A stretch of 64,000 bases of DNA from positions 744,001 through 808,000 of the forward strand of contig NC_000964.3 in the NCBI RefSeq assembly GCF_000009045.1, written 5' to 3'. The notes under the pieces are model-generated. The model ran no database searches. It was given only the letters and a program-made list of their open reading frames with translations, and was not told where the DNA came from. This document shows positions 1 to 11,780 of the stretch, piece after piece. A program made the position numbers and the translations under genes. The first letter of the stretch is position 1, and every line of letters begins with the position of its first letter. This DNA is from Bacillus subtilis subsp. subtilis str. 168 (GTDB taxonomy: Bacteria; Bacillota; Bacilli; Bacillales; Bacillaceae).

Positions 1-738
1 GGTTATCGTGGCTCACTTACAGAAATAGTACAAATAATTGGGCGCTGTACACGTGATAGTTACAATAAAACCTATGCTCAATTTACCAACCTAATCGCAA
101 TGCCTGATGCAAAGGATGAAGTAGTGACTTATACAGTGAATACAATGCTTAAAGCTATTTCTGCCTCACTTTTGATGGAGCAGGTCCTTACACCTGACTT
201 TAAATTTAAACGTAGAAGAAATGAAAGTGAAAAATCTTCTACTACAGGAGAATTATTCGTTAAGGGATTGAAAGAACCATCAACAGAAAATGTCAAAAAG
301 ATTATTGAAAATGATATTAATGATTTAAAAGCAAAAATCATGCAAGATTCACAAGTCCAAAAAACATTTAGTGGAGAAGTAGATCCCAAAGTATTGAACA
401 AAGTGTTGATTCCGAAAGTTATTCAAAAAGTATATCCAAATTTATCAGATGAGGAAATTGAGGAAGTTAGACAGCACGTTGTTCTAGATACAGTTATGAA
501 AGGTGCTAAGTCTGAAGTTGTAGGAAGTAAAGAATTTATAAGAATGGCAGATAAGTTTATAAACATTGAGGATTTAGATATCAATCTGATTGATTCCATC
601 AATCCGTTCCAAAAAGCATTTGAGGTTCTATCGAAAGAATTGAACTCACCAGTGCTAAAACTGATTCAGGAAACTATTGATGCAAAACGTATTAATTTTG
701 ATGAAGATGAACTAGTATTCATATGGCCAAAGGTTTAG
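1..738 (+). CDS. yeeB: 3' part of SF2 helicase-like protein YeeB (starts upstream of window); ends at a probably premature TAG
   Basis: Frame is open from base 1 (GYRGSLTEIVQIIGRCTRD, a helicase motif VI-like QxxGRxxR) through the ORF-track protein to TAG 736-738; the same frame stays open to TAA 859-861. Confidence 0.85.
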   Translation, partial: GYRGSLTEIVQIIGRCTRDSYNKTYAQFTNLIAMPDAKDEVVTYTVNTMLKAISASLLMEQVLTPDFKFKRRRNESEKSSTTGELFVKGLKEPSTENVKKIIENDINDLKAKIMQDSQVQKTFSGEVDPKVLNKVLIPKVIQKVYPNLSDEEIEEVRQHVVLDTVMKGAKSEVVGSKEFIRMADKFINIEDLDINLIDSINPFQKAFEVLSKELNSPVLKLIQETIDAKRINFDEDELVFIWPKV

Positions 739-850
739 GAATTTTATCGTTCAACTGGTAGAAGACCTGATTCAAAATCTGAAGACCCACTTGAAAGGCG
801 TATGGGTGAAGCTGTATTATACATGCAAGAGCTTAGGAGGAAACGTGAAA

Positions 851-1999
851 ATGGCAAGTAATAGATACCATTCTATTAATGAAATCATGGAAAGTCAGCT
901 GTTTTACCAAATCACAACACCACCTAAGAAAACACAAAAAGCCCAGTATGATCCTGAAGTTGAAAAGTTTTTGGAGATTATTGAATTCGTCAAAGAAAAT
1001 GGGCGAGAACCCCAAAAAGTCCCTACTGATTTAACTGAAAGAAGTTTAGCAAGTCGATTAATTGGGATTCGGAAAGATCCTGATCGTATGGAATATTTGA
1101 AAGAGTATGATGAAATTGGATTACTTGAAGTAAGATCGAAGGAACTAACAATTCCTAAAATTTCTTCAATTGATGATATTCTAAAAAGTGGCTTATCTGC
1201 ATTATTAGGTGATAATTTAAATAATGATATAACTAGGTCAATTTTTGATACAAGTTCACTTCAAAAGGTTACGACAATGCCTGAATACGTTGCAAAGCGT
1301 AAAAAAATAAAAGATTTTGGAAAGTTTGAAGAGCTATTCAAGAAGTGCCACAAGGAAATTACAGAGGGTAAACGAAAAATTTTAACTTTCAAAAATGAAC
1401 AAGACATACAGTCAAATAGTTTTTATATATTAAAAGGAGTTCTTCTTTATGTTGAAGATGTGGGAGAACGTAAAAAAGCAAAGGGAAAAACCAATGCTAG
1501 ACTTCGATGTATATTTGAAAATGGAACGGAATCAGATATGTTACTACGTTCCTTATCAGCGGAGTTATATAAACATGGTAGACGTGTGACCGACAATGAA
1601 GATACATTGTTGGATAATGTTAGAGAAGATGATGTTTCGACTGGCTTTATTTACGTACTAAAATCTTTGAGTACAGATCCGCAAATTAGTTCCATTAAGA
1701 ATTTATATAAGATCGGTTTTACAACTGGTTCAGTAGAAAATAGAATCAGGAATGCAGAAAATCAATCAACTTATCTTTATGCTCCAGTAGAAATTGTAAC
1801 CACATATCAAGTGTTCAATATGAATGCTAGCAAATTTGAGACGGCAATCCATCATGCGCTAGCAAATAATAATTTGGATGTTTCTATTTTGGGGGCAAAT
1901 GGAAAGATGTTAGTTCCTAAAGAGTGGTTCGTTGTCACACTTGAAGATTTACAAGCTGTAATAGATGAGATTGTGATGATGGTTCATCTTTATGACTAA
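851..1999 (+). CDS. yeeC: GIY-YIG / T5orf172 (MUG113)-type nuclease domain protein
   Basis: ATG 851 preceded by AGGAGG; C-terminal GFIYVLKS...LYKIGFT...FETAIH...KEWF is typical of the T5orf172 family. The ORF-track start at 791 lacks an SD. Confidence 0.85.
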   Translation: MASNRYHSINEIMESQLFYQITTPPKKTQKAQYDPEVEKFLEIIEFVKENGREPQKVPTDLTERSLASRLIGIRKDPDRMEYLKEYDEIGLLEVRSKELTIPKISSIDDILKSGLSALLGDNLNNDITRSIFDTSSLQKVTTMPEYVAKRKKIKDFGKFEELFKKCHKEITEGKRKILTFKNEQDIQSNSFYILKGVLLYVEDVGERKKAKGKTNARLRCIFENGTESDMLLRSLSAELYKHGRRVTDNEDTLLDNVREDDVSTGFIYVLKSLSTDPQISSIKNLYKIGFTTGSVENRIRNAENQSTYLYAPVEIVTTYQVFNMNASKFETAIHHALANNNLDVSILGANGKMLVPKEWFVVTLEDLQAVIDEIVMMVHLYD

Positions 2000-2260
2000 A
2001 TTAGTATATTAGGATTTTAGTATTAATAATAATTTTATAGTAGACTATGAAAAAATTTGATGCCATAACAATAACTTGTTCCGCTTTGGAGTTTGTCACA
2101 ATTGTAGAATTATGTGTTGCGAGTATTAATAGGAAGGGGTTGAGCGACCGCAAAAAAAATTTTCGGTGCTGTCCGCAAAAGGGAGTTTGGGTGTTTTGCG
2201 TTATATTTGGTTGTGTGAAGGTTAGCGGAAACTCAATTCGTGAAGTTAGGATTGCGGTTA

Positions 2261-2566
2261 TTACGACTGAGTAGTTTCGTCATACTCTTTTAGCAGTTTT
2301 TCTGTCTTATGCATTTCTTTGAGCATCGGATTCATGTAGTCGTTAGCTGATTCTAGATATGCTCTCGTCAGAGTGTCTAGTTTATTTCTAACTTTAGAGA
2401 GGTCTTCTTCGAATTTTCCATCCGATGATTGAAGGATAAATTCTTTTGCCTCTTCATATCTTTTTAATATGTTTTTCACCATTGGAGTTGGATTCTTTTG
2501 ATTTATTGTTTTTATTACAGTGATTGTTAAATTTATTTGTTTTATTAATTCTTTTCTTACTGTCAA
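2261..2566 (-). CDS. yeeD: Small helical protein, putative orphan immunity protein
   Basis: TTG start with AAAGGAG SD; 101 aa, amphipathic helical pattern; lies downstream of a toxin-immunity pair. Function inferred from context. Confidence 0.7.
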   Translation of the reverse strand: MTVRKELIKQINLTITVIKTINQKNPTPMVKNILKRYEEAKEFILQSSDGKFEEDLSKVRNKLDTLTRAYLESANDYMNPMLKEMHKTEKLLKEYDETTQS

Positions 2567-2632
2567 GGTGATGCTCCTTTTAAATCTCTATTCTATTTGA
2601 GAGTTGCTATATCTGTTTAATGGTTTGATAGA

Positions 2633-2839
2633 CTACTCATCTTTATAATTTAGAGCAATTTTTACAACTTGTTCCGCTGTGTAATCTTCATTGCTCCAGA
2701 AAATTAAATCACTTGGTGCCGGATAAGGAACATTTTTCTCTAATAAATCGAGATATTCACTGACTTTCTCATCATCTAATGTTGGGTTCATTAATTCCTT
2801 TACAAGAAAGATCAACTCTTCTTTTGTCAGTTTATCCAT
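2633..2839 (-). CDS. yezA: Colicin/pyocin DNase-immunity-like small acidic protein (68 aa)
   Basis: ATG 2839 with GGAGGG SD; ELIFLVKELMN..DDEKVSEYLDLLEKNVPYPAPSDLIFW resembles Im7/Im9-type immunity proteins (HPxGSDLIYY motif). Confidence 0.75.
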   Translation of the reverse strand: MDKLTKEELIFLVKELMNPTLDDEKVSEYLDLLEKNVPYPAPSDLIFWSNEDYTAEQVVKIALNYKDE

Positions 2840-3038
2840 TGTTTGCCCTCCAATAGATTGTATCTCCATTGATTTTACAAATGACTTTATTTCTTCTGAT
2901 AATGTTATAGGTTGTTTGCATAATGATAGATAATTGTCTTGAGAAAAGTTAGTCTCATTATAGAGTTTATTAATTGTATTTATAACAATATATTCATATG
3001 GAAAACCTCTAAAATATCTTTATTTTAGATTGGTTTAT

Positions 3039-3076
3039 AAAAAATAGCTCAGCAGAGTAGGGCTGAGCCATTTTTT
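3039..3076 (-). terminator. Intrinsic terminator after yeeF-yezG
   Basis: GCTCAGC-N8-GCTGAGC stem with A/T runs on both sides, immediately after the yezG stop. Confidence 0.75.
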
Positions 3077-3078
3077 AA

Positions 3079-3549
3079 TTATAGACCGAGGTAACTAATT
3101 ACAAATTCTTTATCATCCTCATCTTCAGGCAAAATACCAAGGTTTTTATATTCCCATATTGCGATTCTTTCATATCCATCTAATTCTGAGGCTAAAATAT
3201 CATCATAATTATAATCTAATTGGAATTCTCCGCTACGATCCAATGTTAGTGTAAGGTTAGTCCAAACATCATCGTTATTATTTCTGTGTTCAGTTCTTAA
3301 TTCTTCAAAAAGTTCTCTTAGTTCTCTTAACAACGTCTTGAAAATATCCTTGCTTACGTTGTAATGGCTAGGTATATCTTGTGAATAAATAATTTGATTA
3401 TTTTCTGGTGTTCTGAAATGAAAAAGAACCATTGTGGAATCATCTAATACTTCTGCATAAAGATATATCTTTGTCCATTCACCAGGTATGATGTCATTGA
3501 GTTTTTCTCCAATAAGTTGATACAAATCTTGCATCTTCCTAGTTTCCAT
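3079..3549 (-). CDS. yezG: DUF600/EsaG-like antitoxin of YeeF
   Basis: YQLIGEKLNDIIPGEWTKIYLYAEV...WTNLTLTLDRSGEFQLDYNYDD family pattern; directly follows the toxin stop. Alternative start at 3534. Confidence 0.9.
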   Translation of the reverse strand: METRKMQDLYQLIGEKLNDIIPGEWTKIYLYAEVLDDSTMVLFHFRTPENNQIIYSQDIPSHYNVSKDIFKTLLRELRELFEELRTEHRNNNDDVWTNLTLTLDRSGEFQLDYNYDDILASELDGYERIAIWEYKNLGILPEDEDDKEFVISYLGL

Positions 3550-3553
3550 TCTT

Positions 3554-5563
3554 CTAACCCCCAGGCTGATTTTTAATAGAGACGCTTATTTCTTTTCTGC
3601 TCCCAATTTTGTAGGTTACATCGAAATATGATGGTCTAAGTGAATCCCCAGAATAGACTGGTTCTATTTGAACTGCTACTTTTTTAGGTGGTTTTTTGCT
3701 TAGGGCTTTTGCCCACTCCTGCTCCATCTCATACCATTTCCCACCGCTCCTATTAATCTGAGAATTCATCGGCACGATATTGTCAAACTGGCCTGAGCCT
3801 TTGAATTGGGTGGCGATTAAATGGCCGCCGTCATCGTCAGGCTTTCGGTCCTGGGGCTTTCCAGCATTCGTTTGTGCATATTGGTTTCGTTTCGCTTCTC
3901 CCAGCTGCAAGTCTGCTTTGACACTTGTAATTCTACCATAGTTGTCAGTCGTGTACGTGTAGCCTTCTTTTGTTTTGTAGATGATATTAGGCTTCAGCAC
4001 TTTCTTTCTGCTCCATCTTGCGAAATGCTCGCCGTATTTGACGGTTACCGGCGGTACATGTGGCGCTGGAGTTCGTCTTCCGCTTGATGACGTTCCGTAT
4101 GGTTTCGGCAGGATGACCTTGGCGAATTTTTGCAGTCCTTCTTTAAGCGTGACCCCGTTGACTGCGTTGTAAGGAACGCCTGCCGGCACTAAATCATGAC
4201 GGGGATGATACGGGAGAATATCCGCAAGTGTGAGATCTCCGATTTGATTTAACTTGGTTTTGACGTGTTTTTTTGATACTTCAATGCCTGTGTTTACTTT
4301 TTGTTTGATGTGATCAACGGTTTGTTTTGAGACTGTTATGGCTTTTTGGGCTGTTGCTGATTTGCTTGCTGCTGTTTTGACTTTGGTCGTCACTTTGGCG
4401 GCTGTGCCAGTTTTTGAGACGGCTCCTACGCCTTTTGTGCCGACAATTGATGTGACAACAGTGCCAACCGCATATGACACCCATCTTGCTCTTGAGTAGG
4501 TGTCACCATTCACCATGTCTTTTTGATACGATTCTTCGATTGCCGCTGAAATGGCTTCATACGTTTTGATCGGGTGAGCCATCGCTCCGGTAATCGCTTC
4601 AACGGTTCCTCCCGGATCTGTGACCATATCCCACAGGCCTACGACCGCGTCTTTCCCGGAATCATAAAGGCCGACGGCAACCCCTTTGAAGCCTGCTTCA
4701 AGCTCACGCGTGTTTTCAATTTGGGTGAAGTATCTCTGTTGTTCAGCTGTCAGATTTTCATAGCCGATCGTTTTTGCCATTTCGTAGAATTCATCGGCAT
4801 CTGCATAATCGTAGTTTTTCAGTCTTTCTTTCAGTTTCTCAATCTCGCGTTCCTTCGCTTCCTCTTTCTTAATCTTCAAGTAAGCCTCAGTCCGCTTTTC
4901 AATGTCGCCTTTTTTCTTATGTATGTCACTCTCACGGTACGCCTTGGCGTTGTAGTGGATGGGTGTGGCGTTTTTGCCTTTACCCGTTGCTTCTTGGAGC
5001 TTTTGGAAGTCGGATTTGATGAATTGTTCGTTTGGTTCAGACAGGGCGTATTCTGTTTTCAGGTCTTCGTCCAAGGCGTCCAATTTTTCCAGTGTTTTTT
5101 TGCGTTTGTCGTTGGCATCGGCCAGCTCGTCTTTGAAGGTTTCTGTTGAAAACAGGTCGAGCGGGAGGATGTCGTCGATATCGTTTAGGATGTCTTTCAT
5201 CGCTTTTTTCTGTTCGGACATGATGGATTTAGATTTTTTATTGGCATTTGCCAGTTCGTGCTCCAGGAAGGATTCTTCGATGTATGCGTCTGAGAGGCCT
5301 TTGTCTTCGGCGGCTCCGGCGATGCTGTTGAAAAATGCGATTTTCATGTCGATGTAGTCGATCCACTGGTCGGCGACGCCGACGTGGTCGTGATAGAATG
5401 CCTTGATGTTGCTGGCGCCTTTTCCTGAGAATTCACTGTCACTGAGATCAGCGACTCCTTTTAACGCTTTTCTCAAGTTGACCATTTGCGTTCTTAGTTC
5501 TTTGTACTCTTTTGCACGGTCTGTCGCTTCCGAAAGCAGTGTTTTCGCTTCAAATACTTTCAT
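3554..5563 (-). CDS. yeeF: LXG-domain polymorphic toxin (type VII secretion substrate) with C-terminal DNase
   Basis: N-terminal LXG ([13 protein letters not shown]), pre-toxin region, C-terminal [28 protein letters not shown] nuclease motif; ATG 5563 fits the AAGGGA SD spacing. Confidence 0.92.
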
Positions 5564-5774
5564 GACCATTTCCCTTCTTTTGTTCGCTCAATATCAAAAT
5601 TTTACCACGGGTCGGGATAAGGTGGGGGTGAGAACGTGTTTTGGTGGAAAAATGAGTCATTTGGCATGTGTCTTTATTCGTGGAGGGATTGGAGGAAACA
5701 TGGTCGAAATGATATTGATTGCTACACATTTTTTGGAAGTTTGTATTCTATATTGTTTTTTAAGGAGCATGTTG

Positions 5775-6797
5775 ATGACGAAAAAACGGATTACATTTGG
5801 TTTATTAGTTTTAATGGTATGTGTCATCCTGTTTGTTCTGTATGTTCAGTTACGCAATAAAGATAGTATTCCTGTCCAATCTTCCGCCATTCACCCCGAA
5901 GAAGACCGCATCTTTTTTATTTACTCCAATCCTTTCATAAAAGAAAGCGTGCTGCTTTCAACCTCTACAGGCGAACGGTTTAACAGGCGTACGTTTAAGG
6001 TGGCGGATGTGCCTTATATTCAAACGAAATCTTATGCATCAACAGACCTTGTATTATTGGCGGAACACGAGCCTTTTTACTACACGCTGGAGAAGGATGT
6101 GATCAAAGAGCATCCGCTGTCAGATCCATTTGCGTTTTGGTATGAGGGGAAGGATGTCACTATTGAGGCCTATAATGTTGATACGACGGGAAATGAGATC
6201 CACATAAACGACAGAAAAACGAAAAAGGAATATACCCTTACCTTGCCTCCGCTTGTCACAATGGGGGCCAGTGATGAGAACTTTATTTATATCATTCAAA
6301 GCATGTCTATTTACGTGATTGACAGAAAAACAGAGGAAATGATTGAGACCCTGAGCTTAGCCTCATACGCTGATCAATTCGCAGACTCGGAGGAATTTAT
6401 CGTCGCGAGCTCGGATCATAAATTGACTGTGATTGAAAAAGGGACATGGAAGACGACATATATTGCGTATCCTGAAGATCTTGAATATGCAGATACTGTG
6501 TACTATGACAAAGAAAGCGGCAGTTTTTACGTGGCGTACGAGGACAAAGAGGGTGGAGCGAACTTGCTGGAATATGGGGAGGATTTTTCTATTCACACAT
6601 ACAGCTTGAAATTCCCTTATATGGAGGCGAAGTTTAAGGGGAATCTATTGTATATAGTTGCCCAGGAAGAGCATAAAAAGGGCATCGGCGGATACGTGGG
6701 TGTGTTTGATATCCATTCTAAGGAGATGCTTTATCAGTTTGATTTGCCTGAGGAACAGGTGAAGGTTCAGGATTTTGTTGTGGTTGACAATAAGTGA
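5775..6797 (+). CDS. yeeG: Membrane-anchored extracellular protein, beta-rich, unknown function
   Basis: ATG 5775 with AAGGAG SD; KKR followed by one hydrophobic TM segment, then a soluble domain. The ORF-track start at 5403 overlaps yeeF antisense. Confidence 0.8.
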   Translation: MTKKRITFGLLVLMVCVILFVLYVQLRNKDSIPVQSSAIHPEEDRIFFIYSNPFIKESVLLSTSTGERFNRRTFKVADVPYIQTKSYASTDLVLLAEHEPFYYTLEKDVIKEHPLSDPFAFWYEGKDVTIEAYNVDTTGNEIHINDRKTKKEYTLTLPPLVTMGASDENFIYIIQSMSIYVIDRKTEEMIETLSLASYADQFADSEEFIVASSDHKLTVIEKGTWKTTYIAYPEDLEYADTVYYDKESGSFYVAYEDKEGGANLLEYGEDFSIHTYSLKFPYMEAKFKGNLLYIVAQEEHKKGIGGYVGVFDIHSKEMLYQFDLPEEQVKVQDFVVVDNK

Positions 6798-6820
6798 ATA
6801 CTATATGAAATAGAATGACA

Positions 6821-6848
6821 AAGACCCTTGCATAAAGGGTTCTTTTTT
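6821..6848 (+). terminator. Intrinsic terminator after yeeG
   Basis: AGACCCTT/AAGGGTTCT stem followed by a T-run. Confidence 0.7.
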
Positions 6849-6897
6849 ATGAAAAAAACAAATTGACAGGATGAAAAAACAATTTCTTCCTTCTATA

Positions 6898-6926
6898 TTG
6901 TTTTCAAAATTTGGGATTGATAGAAT
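6898..6926 (+). promoter_or_regulatory. SigA-type promoter of rapH
   Basis: TTGTTT-17-TAGAAT with a TG extended -10. Confidence 0.5.
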
Positions 6927-6958
6927 ATGACATATCTCATAGAGAAGGAGGGAAGCCG

Positions 6959-8089
6959 TTGAGTCAAGCCATACCGTCTTCGCGTGTTGGTGTTAAGATT
7001 AATGAATGGTATAAAATGATTCGCCAGTTCAGTGTTCCGGATGCTGAGATTCTGAAAGCGGAGGTTGAGCAGGACATTCAGCAGATGGAAGAAGATCAGG
7101 ATTTACTGATCTATTATTCTCTGATGTGTTTTCGGCACCAGCTGATGCTTGATTATTTGGAGCCGGGAAAAACATACGGGAATCGCCCTACAGTGACAGA
7201 GCTTCTTGAAACGATCGAGACCCCTCAGAAAAAACTCACAGGTCTTTTGAAATACTACTCTTTGTTTTTCCGCGGCATGTATGAATTTGACCAAAAAGAA
7301 TATGTGGAAGCGATCGGATATTATCGCGAGGCGGAGAAAGAACTGCCGTTTGTGTCAGATGATATTGAGAAAGCGGAATTCCATTTTAAAGTGGCAGAAG
7401 CGTATTATCACATGAAGCAAACCCATGTGTCGATGTATCATATTCTTCAAGCCTTGGACATTTATCAAAACCATCCTCTATACAGCATTAGAACGATACA
7501 AAGCTTGTTTGTGATCGCCGGCAACTATGATGATTTCAAACATTATGATAAAGCGCTCCCGCATTTAGAGGCGGCGCTGGAATTGGCAATGGACATTCAA
7601 AATGACAGGTTTATCGCCATTTCTCTATTGAACATTGCAAACAGCTATGACAGATCAGGAGACGATCAGATGGCTGTAGAACATTTCCAAAAAGCGGCGA
7701 AAGTAAGCAGAGAGAAAGTGCCTGATCTGCTTCCGAAAGTCTTGTTTGGATTAAGCTGGACATTATGTAAAGCGGGCCAAACACAGAAGGCGTTTCAGTT
7801 CATAGAGGAAGGATTAGACCATATCACAGCACGTTCTCACAAATTTTATAAAGAATTGTTTCTGTTCTTGCAGGCCGTGTACAAGGAGACTGTTGATGAA
7901 CGAAAAATTCATGATCTTTTAAGCTATTTCGAAAAAAAGAACCTGCACGCTTACATTGAAGCATGTGCCCGGAGTGCTGCCGCTGTTTTTGAAAGCAGCT
8001 GTCACTTTGAACAAGCAGCTGCGTTTTATCGGAAAGTGCTGAAAGCCCAAGAAGATATTCTAAAAGGAGAGTGTTTATATGCCTATTAA
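6959..8089 (+). CDS. rapH: Response regulator aspartate phosphatase RapH (TPR)
   Basis: TTG start after AAGGAGGG; Rap N-terminus (VGVKINEWYKMIRQF, LLIYYSLMCFRHQLMLDY) followed by TPR repeats. Confidence 0.95.
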   Translation: MSQAIPSSRVGVKINEWYKMIRQFSVPDAEILKAEVEQDIQQMEEDQDLLIYYSLMCFRHQLMLDYLEPGKTYGNRPTVTELLETIETPQKKLTGLLKYYSLFFRGMYEFDQKEYVEAIGYYREAEKELPFVSDDIEKAEFHFKVAEAYYHMKQTHVSMYHILQALDIYQNHPLYSIRTIQSLFVIAGNYDDFKHYDKALPHLEAALELAMDIQNDRFIAISLLNIANSYDRSGDDQMAVEHFQKAAKVSREKVPDLLPKVLFGLSWTLCKAGQTQKAFQFIEEGLDHITARSHKFYKELFLFLQAVYKETVDERKIHDLLSYFEKKNLHAYIEACARSAAAVFESSCHFEQAAAFYRKVLKAQEDILKGECLYAY

Positions 8090-8252
8090 GAAAAAAGTGA
8101 TGATGTGTCTGGCTGTTACTCTAGTTTTCGGAAGCATGTCGTTTCCAACCCTGACAAACTCCGGTGGATTTAAGGAATCGACAGATCGAAATACGACGTA
8201 TATCGATCATTCCCCTTACAAACTTAGTGATCAGAAGAAAGCCCTTAGCTAG
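8079..8252 (+). CDS. phrH: Phr signalling peptide precursor PhrH (57 aa; not in ORF track)
   Basis: Translated by hand: MPIKKKVMMCLAVTLVFGSMSFPTLTNSGGFKESTDRNTTYIDHSPYKLSDQKKALS; signal peptide, overlaps the rapH stop, contains TDRNTT. Confidence 0.9.
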   Translation: MPIKKKVMMCLAVTLVFGSMSFPTLTNSGGFKESTDRNTTYIDHSPYKLSDQKKALS

Positions 8253-8263
8253 GGCTTTTTCTT
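8235..8263 (+). terminator. Intrinsic terminator of rapH-phrH
   Basis: AAAGCCCT-tagct-AGGGCTTT stem with T-run, overlapping the phrH stop. Confidence 0.75.
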
Positions 8264-8411
8264 GCTTTACGGAAGACGTTCCATTTTCCACATCGCGGCA
8301 TTCCTTCTATTTCTAACGCAAGACACTCGAAACAACCAAACCATTTGAGGTATAATGGATAAAGTGAATAACAGTATTTAGATTGATATATATGAAAGAG
8401 AGTGGAACATC

Positions 8412-9131
8412 ATGGGCCGTAAGTGGAACAATATTAAAGAGAAGAAGGCGTCTAAGGACGCAAATACGAGTCGGATTTATGCGAAGTTTGGCCGTGAGAT
8501 TTATGTGGCGGCGAAACAGGGCGAGCCTGATCCGGAATCCAACCAGGCGCTGAAGGTTGTGCTTGAACGTGCGAAGACTTACAGCGTGCCGAAAAACATC
8601 ATTGAACGTGCGATCGAGAAGGCGAAGGGCGGAGCGGAAGAGAATTACGATGAGCTTCGTTATGAGGGCTTCGGGCCGAACGGATCAATGATTATCGTTG
8701 ATGCGCTGACGAATAATGTAAACCGTACGGCGCCGGAAGTGCGTGCGGCGTTCGGGAAAAACGGCGGAAACATGGGTGTGAGCGGATCTGTTGCTTACAT
8801 GTTTGACGCGACGGCTGTAATCGGTGTGGAAGGCAAAACGGCTGACGAAGCGCTTGAAATCCTGATGGAAGCGGATGTTGATGTACGTGACATTTTAGAA
8901 GAGGATGACAGCGCGATCGTGTATGCCGAGCCTGATCAATTCCATGCGGTGCAAGAGGCGTTTAAAAACGCGGGTGTCGAGGAATTTACAGTAGCGGAGC
9001 TGACAATGCTTGCGCAAAGTGAAGTAACGCTTCCGGATGATGCAAAGGAACAGTTTGAAAAATTGATTGATGCATTAGAAGATTTGGAAGATGTTCAGCA
9101 GGTATATCATAACGTTGATTTAGGTGAGTAA
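8412..9131 (+). CDS. yeeI: YebC/PmpR family protein (YebC2, translation/ribosome-stall factor)
   Basis: [10 protein letters not shown]...D..., [23 protein letters not shown] family signatures. Confidence 0.93.
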
Positions 9132-9137
9132 GGAGTG

Positions 9138-9164
9138 AGCAGGCTGTTATGGCCTGCTTTTTTT
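9138..9164 (+). terminator. Intrinsic terminator after yeeI
   Basis: AGCAGGC/GCCTGCT stem followed by a T-run. Confidence 0.75.
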
Positions 9165-9204
9165 GTCCCGGAAATTGTTTTAGCTGTATGTAGGCGGCCG
9201 CCTA

Positions 9205-9232
9205 TACGATCTATAAGATATTCTCATACTCT
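9205..9232 (+). promoter_or_regulatory. Candidate SigK promoter of yeeK
   Basis: tACg-N16-CATActcT matches the mACm-N16-CATAnnnT consensus apart from the -35 flanks. Confidence 0.45.
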
Positions 9233-9264
9233 GGACTGTAACCTATGTGAAGGAGAGAGTAAAT

Positions 9265-9702
9265 ATGACTGATACAAGACATATGTATGGCGGACCTGGT
9301 TTTGGTCATTATCAGGGCTTTGGTATTGGCCACCCGGGCTATGGCATGCAAAGCACAGGCTATCCGGGCTATGGCATGTATGGAGGCCACCCGGGCTATG
9401 GCATGCAAGGCTACCCAGATCACGGCATACATGGAGGAGTCGGCGGCTATCCGGGATATGGTGGGTACGGCGGTTACCCAAGCGGCGGCTATGGAGGCTC
9501 TCCGGGAACTGGAAGCTATCCGAGCATGCACCATGAAAATGATGGCCATCACCACTATTATCACCATCATCATGATGGAAAAGATAATCTTCATCACCAT
9601 CATCACCATGTTGGAAAGGATAATCATCACCACCATCATGATGGTCATTATGGCCACCATCATCACCATATGGGCCACTGGGGAAAAGACGGTTATAAAT
9701 AA
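9265..9702 (+). CDS. yeeK: Spore coat protein YeeK (Gly/Tyr-rich repeats, His-rich C-terminus)
   Basis: ATG 9265 after AAGGAGAG; (G/H/Y)PGYGM repeats and poly-His tracts. Confidence 0.9.
   Translation: MTDTRHMYGGPGFGHYQGFGIGHPGYGMQSTGYPGYGMYGGHPGYGMQGYPDHGIHGGVGGYPGYGGYGGYPSGGYGGSPGTGSYPSMHHENDGHHHYYHHHHDGKDNLHHHHHHVGKDNHHHHHDGHYGHHHHHMGHWGKDGYK
9334..9405 (+). repeat. Coding repeat CCGGGCTATGGCATG x3 (PGYGM)
   Basis: Exact 15-mer at 9334, 9364 and 9391. Confidence 0.9.
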
Positions 9703-9724
9703 AGAAGATGATGATAAAAAGAGG

Positions 9725-9753
9725 ACACTCTTGCAGATCAAGAGTGTTTTTTT
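9725..9753 (+). terminator. Intrinsic terminator after yeeK
   Basis: ACACTCTTG/CAAGAGTGT stem followed by a T-run. Confidence 0.75.
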
Positions 9754-9763
9754 AGCTTTTTTC

Positions 9764-9792
9764 TTGACTGTTCAGTCTGGAAAATGGTAACA
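9764..9792 (+). promoter_or_regulatory. SigA promoter of yezE overlapped by a palindromic operator
   Basis: TTGACT-17-TAACAT with TG extension; GACT-gttc-AGTC palindrome covers the -35. Confidence 0.6.
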
Positions 9793-9816
9793 TTTGTTTC
9801 AGGAGGTGATCATTTT

Positions 9817-10401
9817 TTGGGGAGGAATAAAGAATTTGATACGGCGCTTGTTCTTCACAGGGCGATAGAGGTTTTTGGAGAGTATGGCTACGAAGGAACG
9901 TCTCTTCAGGATCTGCTCTCTCATTTAGGCATTGCGCGCCAAAGTTTGTATGATACGTATGGAACGAAGCGTGATTTGTTTTTGTCCGCTGTGAAATCGT
10001 ATCTTGAAGGGAAAAACGCTGCCGTTATGGAAAGGCTTGAAGCGCCAGGATCTGTAAAGGAAGCCATTCGTGATATTTTTCAGGAGGGTGTCAATGCCCT
10101 GAGGGATCCGGAACGGGCGAAGGCGTGCTACATTATTAACAGCGCGATTGAACAGATCCCGCATGACCCTGAGCTTGCCCGGTATTTTGAAAGACAATCC
10201 AAGCAGCTTGAGGACGCTTTTTATCACGGGCTTTTAAGAGCGAAGGATCAAGGAGAATTGAATGGCGAAGATACTGATATATCTGCGCTTGCTCGGTACC
10301 TGAATCAGAGCAGGCTGTCACTGACATTTATTGCAAAAGTGACGGCAGATATGGATCGGCTTCAGGACCATGTTGACGTGAGTTTATCAGTGCTTGATTA
10401 A
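9817..10401 (+). CDS. yezE: TetR-family transcriptional regulator (NemR/ComR-like)
   Basis: TTG 9817 after AGGAGGTG; HTH FGEYGYEGTSLQDLLSHLGIARQSLYDTYGTKRDLF. Confidence 0.9.
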   Translation: MGRNKEFDTALVLHRAIEVFGEYGYEGTSLQDLLSHLGIARQSLYDTYGTKRDLFLSAVKSYLEGKNAAVMERLEAPGSVKEAIRDIFQEGVNALRDPERAKACYIINSAIEQIPHDPELARYFERQSKQLEDAFYHGLLRAKDQGELNGEDTDISALARYLNQSRLSLTFIAKVTADMDRLQDHVDVSLSVLD

Positions 10402-10436
10402 CATGTGGTAAAGGATTCTTTGCCCATGTATGTACT

Positions 10437-10459
10437 TTTTGGACTGAATAGTCTAGAAA
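10437..10459 (+). repeat. 23-bp direct repeat copy 1 / operator-like palindrome upstream of yesE
   Basis: TTTTGGACTGAATAGTCTAGAAA, identical to 11766-11788. Confidence 0.85.
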
Positions 10460-10479
10460 TAAAAATGAGGTGATGATGA

Positions 10480-10923
10480 ATGTTGATGAATGAGTTTGAA
10501 AAAGCATGTGAAACATTGAGAAAGTTTATGGCTTATATGCTTGAGAAGGACATGAAGAGCTGGACGGAGCTTTGGGATGAGAATGCTGTATTTGAGTTTC
10601 CTTATGCGCCGGAGGGATCACCAAAAAGAATAGAAGGAAAAGCGGCCATTTACGATTATATTAAAGATTATCCTAAGCAGATTCATCTTTCTTCATTTAC
10701 CGCTCCGACAGTGTACCGTTCAGCAGACTCGAATACGGTGATTGCGGAGTTTCAATGTGACGGCCATGTGATTGAGACTGGACTGCCTTATCGCCAAAGC
10801 TATATCAGTGTCATCGAAACGAGAGACGGCCGCATTGTGCGTTATAGGGATTATTGGAATCCGCTTGTTGTAAAAGAGGCCTTTGGAGGATCATTTTTGC
10901 AAACAGAGGAGAGTGGGAAATGA
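10480..10923 (+). CDS. yesE: SnoaL/NTF2-like (PhzA/B-like) protein
   Basis: WTELWDENAVFEFPYAP...EGKAAI...DGRIVRYRDYWNP pattern. Confidence 0.85.
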   Translation: MLMNEFEKACETLRKFMAYMLEKDMKSWTELWDENAVFEFPYAPEGSPKRIEGKAAIYDYIKDYPKQIHLSSFTAPTVYRSADSNTVIAEFQCDGHVIETGLPYRQSYISVIETRDGRIVRYRDYWNPLVVKEAFGGSFLQTEESGK

Positions 10924-11780
10924 TGAAACAGAATCCGATTTTAATCACGGGCGGGACCGGCACAGTCGGCAGCCGAATCGCCAGCCGTTTAATAAAGCTG
11001 GGATACAGAGTGCGTATTGCAAGCCGGAAAAAGGGCGCGCTTGCTGATGCTGAGTATGTGTATTTTAATTGGAAGTACGCCTCCAGTTTTACGCCTGCTC
11101 TGGAACAGGTAAAACAGATCTATCTTGTTGCTCCGGTCGGTGTATTTGATCCGGCTCCCTATGTGCTTCCCTTTTTAAAGGAAGCAAAGCGTCTCGGCGC
11201 AAAGCGGGTAGTGATGCAAAGTGCGTCTGTTGTCTCCGAGAACGGTCCCGTGTTTGGCGCGCTTCACCAGGCAGTGCGCGAGTTTCCAGAATGGACGGTG
11301 CTGCGGCCCTCATACTTTATGCAAAATTTCATCAATGTCCAGCACCGCATGTCTATTCAAACGGAGGGGCGCATCACAACGGCTTCGGGTGAAGGAAAAC
11401 TTGGGTTTATTGACGCTGATGACATCGCAGAAACAGCCGTCAGGGCTTTGATTGATGATGTTCCTCATCAAACACATCATATTCTGACAGGTCCCGAGGC
11501 GCTGAGCTATGCCGAAGCGGCGGAGATCATTGGAGCTGCGGCGGGACGCCGGGTGGAGCATGTCAGCATTTCTCGTTCCGAGCTGCAGCATAAAATGGAG
11601 GCAGGAGGTTTGCCCGCGGATTATGCCCATTTTATGGCGAAGCTTGATGAGGCAATTAGCCATGGTGCGGAACATCGGGTAACGGATACAGTGAAGCGTG
11701 TGACGGGAAAAGAACCTCGTTCGCTGTCAGAGTTTGCGGCTGCTCATGCTGCATATTGGACCTCATTTTGGACTGAATAG
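10920..11780 (+). CDS. yesF: NmrA-like NAD(P)-binding oxidoreductase
   Basis: ILITGGTGTVG Rossmann motif, LRPSYFMQNF, FIDADDIA; ATGA overlap with yesE. Confidence 0.85.
   Translation: MMKQNPILITGGTGTVGSRIASRLIKLGYRVRIASRKKGALADAEYVYFNWKYASSFTPALEQVKQIYLVAPVGVFDPAPYVLPFLKEAKRLGAKRVVMQSASVVSENGPVFGALHQAVREFPEWTVLRPSYFMQNFINVQHRMSIQTEGRITTASGEGKLGFIDADDIAETAVRALIDDVPHQTHHILTGPEALSYAEAAEIIGAAAGRRVEHVSISRSELQHKMEAGGLPADYAHFMAKLDEAISHGAEHRVTDTVKRVTGKEPRSLSEFAAAHAAYWTSFWTE

Follow-up and report, generated by a model that had tools for sequence, protein, structure and literature searches.

The closest described relatives of the locus analyzed here are a second group of MmeI homologs without the PD-ExK motif, delineated by Morgan et al. 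(2009) with YeeA of Bacillus subtilis as a named example. Invariably, their neighbors are a YeeB-like helicase of the DEAD type and a YeeC-like GIY-YIG protein; YeeA alone showed no endonuclease activity, and a Type I-like system that uses single-strand modification was proposed (PMC2731913). YeeA has been identified as DnmA, which produces N6-methyladenine (m6A) in the sequence GACGmAG; it influences the activity of promoters and places no limit on transformation with plasmids (Nye et al. 2020, PMC7261158). Fernandez et al. (2023) reported conserved synteny and an excess of defense genes near DnmA homologs, found that deletion of yeeB or yeeC in strain PY79 left infection by Nf, phi29 and SBS-PhiJ unaffected, observed that YeeB and YeeC of B. 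subtilis lack several C-terminal stretches found in the Vibrio proteins, and termed the cluster a non-functional relic (PMC9973331). In Vibrio crassostreae, yeeAB homologs protect the cells from one phage subclade (Piel et al., bioRxiv 10.1101/2021.05.05.442762). Here we analyze the copy of this operon, dnmA(yeeA)-yeeB-yeeC, in B. subtilis subsp. subtilis str. 168; its last two genes occupy positions 1-1999 of a 64,000-nucleotide stretch of the chromosome (contig NC_000964.3, positions 744,001 to 808,000), the whole of which is referred to below as the window. Published accounts take the 599-amino acid (aa) YeeB of this locus as the native protein (Morgan 2009; Fernandez 2023, PMC9973331). Comparison with orthologs and with other B. 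subtilis strains indicates that this protein is almost certainly the product of a derived amber mutation that removed a conserved C-terminal tail. The searchable papers on the locus mention neither the amber codon nor the intact B. subtilis alleles nor a module shared by YeeB and YeeC.

The first frame of the window is open from the edge through position 735, reading GYRGSLTEIVQIIGRCTRDS..., and contains helicase motif VI; the surrounding region reads '...EIVQIIGRCTRDS...', with the motif itself, QIIGRCTRD, at 31-57. Positions 1-735 of the forward strand encode the last 245 residues (codons 355-599) of the 599-aa YeeB, a superfamily 2 (SF2) helicase/ATPase the start of which lies outside the window, and are 100% identical to the corresponding part of B. 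subtilis loci L081-L083 (L081:9151-9885). Codon 600 is an amber TAG (736-738, forward strand), after which the frame stays open for 40 more codons (739-858) and then ends in TAA TAG; the cut-off part of the frame thus extends over 739-861 of the same strand and includes the original TAA at 859-861, which overlaps the start of yeeC. Consequently, translation of yeeB here ends 112 nucleotides (nt) upstream of the yeeC start, whereas the stop codon of intact yeeB alleles overlaps with the start codon of yeeC. Not all three genes of the cluster are therefore intact in this strain: yeeA and yeeC are full length and yeeB ends at the amber codon.

The nature of this codon becomes clear from the orthologs. 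A scan of one genome per species with a YeeC alignment yielded 80 loci from Bacillota, Pseudomonadota, Campylobacterota, Bacteroidota, Verrucomicrobiota, Planctomycetota and Methanosarcinales, against which the two pieces of the window frame, before and after the TAG, were searched separately; for work on the full-length protein, natural intact alleles of other strains were used. Identity ranged across the loci from 57 to 96% for the 245-aa piece and from 41 to 85% for the 40-aa piece (77-85% for the tails of close orthologs). In all loci where both pieces matched to their ends, they share the frame and are separated by exactly one codon. All of the orthologous loci, 78 of 78, have a sense codon in alignment with the TAG. 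The nine closest, from Bacillales and Enterococcus, carry GAA or GAG (Glu) at this position, and most of the remainder encode Lys, Asn, Gln or Pro. The orthologous frame runs 39-45 residues beyond this codon, up to the overlap with the yeeC start, and 62 of the 64 orthologs that could be aligned from residue 1 are 637-647 aa long, compared with 599 aa here. Because of the uniform presence of a sense codon and the lengths of the orthologs, the TAG is to be read as a true nonsense mutation that removes 41 residues, and we have hardly any doubt, on the strength of these alignments, that it represents a loss of sequence. The nonsense codon that the first-pass annotation of the window had pointed out is accordingly derived, and the sequence it removes is conserved. 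The two exceptions in length are contigs from metagenome-assembled genomes (L060 and L080) with much earlier stops (YeeB of 418 and 225 aa). Disruption of the helicase gene may have occurred in these lineages as well, unless the stops are errors of assembly.

The lost tail shows the hallmarks of a functional part of the protein. In an alignment of 49 full-length YeeB sequences, P610 and R621 are invariant, and K598, F602, D616, E619 and R634 are at least 90% conserved. The pooled pairwise ratio of nonsynonymous to synonymous substitution rates (dN/dS) among seven close orthologs equals 0.085 in the tail, compared with 0.037 in the 245 codons before it; judged by these values, the tail is under purifying selection. 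In the AlphaFold2 model built for an intact YeeB that occurs naturally in B. subtilis, the C-terminus forms two helices, 589-606 and 617-638, with predicted local distance difference test scores (pLDDT) of 80-90, following a segment (558-585) with scores below 50. The stop at codon 600 cuts the first of these helices and removes the second; the 41 residues lost make up half of this helical hairpin. A profile-profile comparison with hhalign further revealed homology between residues 587-636 of YeeB and 31-80 of YeeC (local probability 95%, E 3.6e-8); the two share the pattern hydrophobic-x2-I-x2-F-x4-GRxP-x8-ER-x-[LM]A, and the YeeC model contains the corresponding helices at 35-50 and 61-75. 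This helix-loop-helix module of about 50 aa, which is matched by no Pfam model, corresponds to window positions 697-858 in the yeeB frame (residues 587-640) and 941-1090 in yeeC (residues 31-80), both on the forward strand. The module may be a common docking element. Resemblance of the tail by eye to a helicase-associated (HA) domain was considered and the assignment dropped, with no model in its support; neither the 40-aa tail nor the 245-aa C-terminal piece has a match in Pfam.

The mutation segregates within B. subtilis. Look-ups with three YeeC alleles from one 90% cluster returned B. subtilis loci that carry either a 599-aa or a 640-aa yeeB. Three of these (L085, L087 and L089) carry GAG at the stop position and are otherwise nearly identical to the 168-type locus. 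Over 7.2 kb, from yefB to yeeC, L085 and L089 differ from the 168-type locus by two bases only, namely the first base of the stop codon and one single-nucleotide polymorphism (SNP) in yeeC, the latter also found together with the truncated yeeB allele. The 40 codons after the stop are identical in the truncated and the intact alleles, which argues that no decay has occurred since the mutation. The TAG allele is found on at least three YeeC haplotypes and with two arrangements of the downstream genes, and the intact allele likewise occurs with both arrangements. The exact 640-aa YeeB is indexed in 62 blocks and the 168-type YeeC in 2746 blocks of a collection that is biased towards laboratory strains. 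Given that intact natural alleles exist, the suggestion of the first-pass annotation that the stop codon hides the phenotype of the system is plausible and testable.

Variation was also noticed in yeeA, at codons 249 and 250 (positions 1096-1097 of L103, L104 and L105, equivalent to L081:6184-6185, outside the window). Among nine distinct B. subtilis loci with an intact 640-aa yeeB, three show independent changes at two adjacent bases: E250K in L103, L249F in L104 and three similar contigs, and E250* in L105, where the stop divides yeeA into 249 and 601 aa and is accompanied by S255Y close by. The 15 loci with a truncated yeeB that were compared are unchanged at both codons, and the variant YeeA proteins occur solely beside a 640-aa yeeB. 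Both positions are variable across the YeeA family, with Lys the commonest residue at 250. Either a mutational hotspot or a different route to the tuning or disarming of an active system could account for these changes.

Apart from the single codon in yeeB, the components of the system look intact. The 599-aa YeeB matches the Pfam families DEAD (3.2e-08) and ResIII (9.2e-07), both above the cut-off, and motifs I, II, III and VI, i.e. PPASGKSRA (44-52), DEFHH (154-158), MTGS (185-188) and QIIGRCTRD (365-373), are invariant in 49 sequences. A Foldseek search with the YeeB model gave 504 PDB matches at E <= 0.001, and all of the 50 listed are SF2 enzymes, in keeping with a two-RecA-lobe fold of YeeB; HsdR of EcoR124I is among these many matches, which are generic and single out no family within SF2. 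Searches of NCBIfam and of PDB sequences gave no match for either YeeB or YeeC.

The yeeC gene (851-1999, forward strand) is preceded by an AGGAGG ribosome-binding site, read from the sequence at 835-840 on the same strand, 10 nt upstream of the ATG at 851. The open reading frame (ORF) encodes an apparently intact 382-aa protein of the T5orf172/GIY-YIG nuclease family with three domains. Following the N-terminal helix-loop-helix module, a beta-rich middle domain, delineated from the alignment and the model, spans residues 177-246 (1379-1588, forward strand). The C-terminal nuclease-family domain, residues 265-374 (1643-1972, forward strand), matches T5orf172 (E 1e-14, 55.3 bits, cut-off 20) and MUG113 (E 4.9e-16, 59.5 bits, cut-off 22.3) in Pfam; its GIY motif (G265, I267, Y268), YIG motif (Y286, K287, G289), R298 and E358 are all invariant in 47 homologs. 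YeeC is full length in comparison with the orthologs from Bacillota, and the approximately 15 additional C-terminal residues of the proteobacterial proteins represent a difference between lineages rather than a truncation in B. subtilis. The model of the whole three-domain protein has a pLDDT of 75 and a predicted template modeling score (pTM) of 0.38. The most conserved stretch of the protein is in the middle domain, where N215, R217, L218 and L231-L235 are invariant; the PDB fold matches of this domain are all weak and are to small beta-barrels, namely EF-P/eIF5A domain I, SAWADEE, the UvrD Tudor domain and Mfd.

The gene next upstream of yeeB is, as the first-pass annotation had stated for strain 168, the MmeI-like methyltransferase yeeA; it lies outside the window and was recovered from L081 as an 879-aa protein with all five MmeI Pfam domains. 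Residues 72-878 align with the MmeI crystal chain 5HR4 (E 3e-185); the phmmer alignment begins at YeeA 72 and MmeI 93, such that the first ~71 residues, the part that bears PD-ExK in MmeI, are unaligned. YeeA gives a full-length match (E = 0) to REase_MTase_IIG of PADLOC. A cryptic PD-DxK motif in YeeA (T94-D95 ... D103-x-K105) was considered and set aside: its counterpart in the MmeI alignment is not catalytic, and 7 of 48 sequences have Asn in place of D95.

The association of the three genes is widespread: yeeB is directly upstream of yeeC in 80 of 80 loci, from Bacillota to archaea, and a YeeA-like methylase is present upstream in most of the loci with sufficient flanking sequence, the gene order being kept across many phyla. 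The exceptions are L042 and L047, with no methylase within 8 kb, and L030, where it is located downstream. In many loci outside Bacillales, 1-4.5 kb of additional genes separate yeeA and yeeB, and these include defense-type genes, namely Fic/DOC with a winged helix, YhcG/DUF1016 of the PD-(D/E)xK type, RhuM, and Schlafen AlbA_2 with HATPase_c_4. Fic, RhuM, DUF1016 and Schlafen genes also sit in Type I restriction operons. Examples of the inserts are L016:3569-8065, L020:4496-7975, L054:6836-8056, L072:3483-8004, L013:5510-7954 and L047:1-7987; some of the inserted ORFs have no Pfam match, e.g. L016:5412-6812, L010:7384-8013 and L011:7321-7974.

The neighborhood analysis thus agrees with the suggestion of the first-pass annotation that yeeABC is a candidate uncharacterized defense system as far as the existence of the trio and its conserved order are concerned; the word uncharacterized does not hold, given that the system has been described and partly tested (PMC2731913, PMC7261158, PMC9973331, bioRxiv 10.1101/2021.05.05.442762). 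Most of the checks proposed in the same annotation turn out to have published counterparts: YeeA-dependent methylation, with DnmA producing the GACGmAG mark (PMC7261158), and both gene-neighborhood analysis and phage plating, the latter with no restriction phenotype for the yeeB and yeeC deletions in PY79 (PMC9973331). The PADLOC check gave a partial answer: YeeA matches the type IIG model, and a dedicated model for the trio is missing from PADLOC v2, to judge from the weakness of the remaining matches. With the protein pieces of the window, these were limited to the YeeB C-terminal piece to a 4TM effector (E 0.002) and YeeC to PDC-S57 (7e-07) via the T5orf172 domain; with full-length proteins, YeeB only weakly matched PbeA. 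In our opinion, the interpretation of the trio as a restriction-like module is reasonable but unproven.

These observations suggest a coherent explanation. The operon is best explained as a three-protein restriction-modification-like module that resides on an AT-rich island gained by horizontal transfer. As the targeting subunit of the intact system, YeeA would engage YeeB and YeeC at unmethylated sites, with YeeB acting as an ATP-driven translocase and YeeC as the cutter, so that the trio would amount to a Type I, Type ISP or Type III enzyme divided into three proteins. The complement of GACGAG, CTCGTC, contains no adenine; hence only one strand can be marked, and each round of replication leaves one daughter duplex unmethylated at any given site. 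By analogy with MmeI and the Type III and Type ISP enzymes, cutting would probably need more than one unmodified site, and a need for two or more such sites would spare newly replicated host DNA. The module shared by YeeB and YeeC being a candidate assembly element, the truncated YeeB may fail to join the complex. The amber codon would then disable or cripple the restriction arm and leave DnmA to persist as an effectively orphan methylase; a disabled restriction arm would explain the published lack of restriction in strains 168, PY79 and 3610. We lean, by a modest margin of confidence, towards this explanation as a whole, that is, a derived amber codon disabling the restriction arm of the YeeABC trio.

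Several lines of evidence weigh against it. The TAG is the commoner allele in sequenced B. subtilis, and its presence on several yeeC haplotypes, next to different flanking genes, suggests that the truncation may be tolerated or even functional. The stop leaves the helicase core untouched, and the inactivity of the 599-aa YeeB is a prediction from sequence. For every YeeB and YeeC, nuclease or translocase activity is likewise a prediction, and the PDB fold search with the whole three-domain YeeC model recovered no GIY-YIG structure at E <= 0.001. The published negative tests comprise three phages and natural transformation and would be weak evidence even for an intact system. Finally, GACGAG is not avoided in the genomes of Bacillus phages (PMC9973331), nor is it depleted in the window, where it occurs 17 times on both strands, compared with 22.0 +/- 4.6 in shuffled sequences.

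Some of these observations are shared by the most viable of the alternatives, in which the truncated YeeB still works and the assays were insensitive, or the system acts on particular phages only, as in Vibrio. All ATPase motifs are indeed encoded, along with the helicase core, upstream of the stop, and yeeC has its own strong ribosome-binding site. Among the three phages tested, two are phi29-like, with 0-3 sites (PMC9973331), natural transformation imports DNA as single strands, and the Vibrio homolog is protective against one phage subclade only; furthermore, the wide spread of the TAG allele would be unexpected for a severely harmful loss. However, this possibility is difficult to reconcile with the retention of the tail, under purifying selection, in 78 of 78 orthologs across phyla, with the invariant residues it contains and with the position of the stop in the middle of a confidently modeled helix, so we regard it as improbable.

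Somewhat less probable still, in our estimate, is that the B. subtilis locus is a relic whatever the state of yeeB, with DnmA kept as an epigenetic regulator, yeeB and yeeC decaying as passengers, and even the intact alleles non-restricting. This is the conclusion of Fernandez et al. (PMC9973331), and it accommodates the influence of m6A on promoter activity (PMC7261158), the fragmentation of yefB and yefC, the recombinase genes of the island, as well as the lack of avoidance of the recognition site both in our count for the window and in the published data (PMC9973331). Nevertheless, yeeA, yeeB and yeeC are free of frameshifts and of stops other than the one codon, the post-stop sequence is identical to that of the intact alleles, with no visible decay, and elsewhere the trio is conserved and under purifying selection. 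The remaining alternative, that YeeB and YeeC have no part in restriction and instead work for a mobile element or in DNA repair, e.g. as a homing-type nuclease with its helper helicase, and simply travel with the methylase, has in its favor the T5orf172 domains of phage homing-type and origin-directed nucleases (PMC8263062) and the recombinase remnants on the island, but seems very unlikely considering that the strict yeeB-yeeC pair with an upstream YeeA-family methylase recurs in unrelated genomic contexts, that the YeeA family lost the MmeI nuclease motif precisely where both genes are present (PMC2731913), and that knock-outs in Vibrio alter phage sensitivity.

The explanation by a disabling amber codon can be extended to a more speculative scenario, which we put forward tentatively and consider rather doubtful as a whole. 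Intact YeeABC would be a restriction system that is active and costly in wild B. subtilis and relies on methylation of a single strand; the species-wide spread of the amber codon would result from selection for disarming the system with DnmA methylation retained; the recurrent changes at yeeA codons 249 and 250, confined to intact-yeeB strains, may reflect the same pressure; and the ~50-aa module would bring helicase and nuclease together by docking on the N-terminal, nuclease-dead domain of YeeA.

The genomic surroundings of the operon match the description in the first-pass annotation of an AT-rich stretch next to toxin and immunity genes. The guanine-plus-cytosine (GC) content is 0.335 in window positions 1-2000 and 0.32-0.34 over 1-4000, as against 0.41-0.54 elsewhere in the window (~47% overall in the remainder); in the longer locus L081, the low-GC block measures ~8.6 kb, with yefB at one end and the 3' part of yeeF at the other. 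Looking up exact copies of the 382-aa protein showed that window positions 1-2000 are 100% identical to loci L081-L083, and the coupling of a motif VI helicase ORF (1-735) to a T5orf172/GIY-YIG gene (851-1999), likewise pointed out in that annotation, is confirmed. The gene order in L081 is yefA, yefB and yefC (the recombinase fragments), yeeA (879 aa; 5438-8077), yeeB (599 aa; 8089-9888), yeeC (382 aa; 10001-11149), yeeD, yezA, yezG and yeeF. The genes yeeA, yeeB and yeeC are adjacent and co-directional, and positions 1-1999 of the window hold the end of this dnmA(yeeA)-yeeB-yeeC operon. The neighbors that follow on the same low-GC island lie outside the operon, all on the reverse strand: yeeD (2261-2566), yezA (2633-2869; 78 aa), yezG, a YezG-like immunity gene (3079-3549; Pfam E 2.4e-58), and yeeF, a toxin gene with LXG and Endonuclea_NS_2 domains (3554-5569). 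The match of YezA to the colicin/pyocin immunity family is below the threshold (E 0.005, 17.3 bits, cut-off 21.2); together with the adjacency of yezA to yeeD, it suggests a second small pair of the toxin/immunity type on the island. A 75-aa ORF at 2047-2274 on the forward strand, between yeeC and yeeD, overlaps the 3' end of yeeD in antisense; it is annotated as a gene in some assemblies (e.g. L082:11197-11424), has no Pfam match and is probably not a real gene.

Upstream of yeeA, outside the window (L081:4145-5363), the two recombinase genes are fragments on opposite strands, one a large serine recombinase without the catalytic N-terminal domain and the other a 111-aa remnant with only the end of the Resolvase domain and a helix-turn-helix. 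Their called lengths vary by strain (300, 317 or 187 aa for one; 62, 72, 111 or 125 aa for the other), which fits a decayed mobile element. Only two of the GACGAG sites in the window, at 2364 and 5126, are in its low-GC island part. An Rfam scan of window positions 1-6000 gave no matches, and a scan of 1-2700 for promoters and terminators found sites no more numerous than in shuffled controls.

The trio represents a widespread and mechanistically unsolved kind of restriction-like system, represented in some archaea as well as many phyla of bacteria. Its best-studied copy, that of strains 168, PY79 and 3610, has been judged a non-functional relic from negative phenotypes, and the amber codon is a concrete candidate for their cause. 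Because natural strains carry the intact allele on a nearly identical island, the question of restriction can be addressed directly in the most tractable Gram-positive model. More generally, the annotation of YeeB as a normal protein of 599 aa is a caution that the annotation of a reference strain does not necessarily describe the native protein.

Compared with the systems described so far, the locus is, first of all, the same as the DnmA-YeeB-YeeC cluster of Morgan (2009) and Fernandez (2023), with the same three co-directional genes in the same order. With respect to BREX and DISARM, there are weak partial matches to PglX and DrmMI, and no other BREX or DISARM gene was detected in the 21-kb locus. 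The T5orf172 nucleases, such as Gp88/Odn of phage ICP1, belong to the same GIY-YIG branch as YeeC, which keeps the catalytic Arg and Glu but, unlike these stand-alone DNA-binding proteins, has a different N-terminal module and a beta-rich middle domain and is the product of an operon that also includes methylase and helicase genes. With the MmeI-family Type IIL/IIG enzymes (PDB 5HR4), YeeA shares the methylase, target-recognition and C-terminal domains as well as the modification of one strand of an asymmetric site (PMC7261158); in contrast to MmeI, YeeA alone does not cut DNA (PMC2731913) and is accompanied by a separate helicase and a GIY-YIG protein. The trio differs from Type I systems in that the recognition domain is fused within YeeA, with no separate HsdS, that YeeB has helicase domains only, with no nuclease fused to them as in HsdR, that the nuclease is a separate GIY-YIG protein, YeeC, rather than a PD-(D/E)xK domain, and that only one strand is methylated. 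What it has in common with Type I (HsdM/HsdS/HsdR), Type ISP and Type III systems is the pairing of a methylase/recognition unit with an SF2 ATPase, and in the case of Type I, the likeness extends to the match of the YeeB model, among many SF2 enzymes, with HsdR of EcoR124I.

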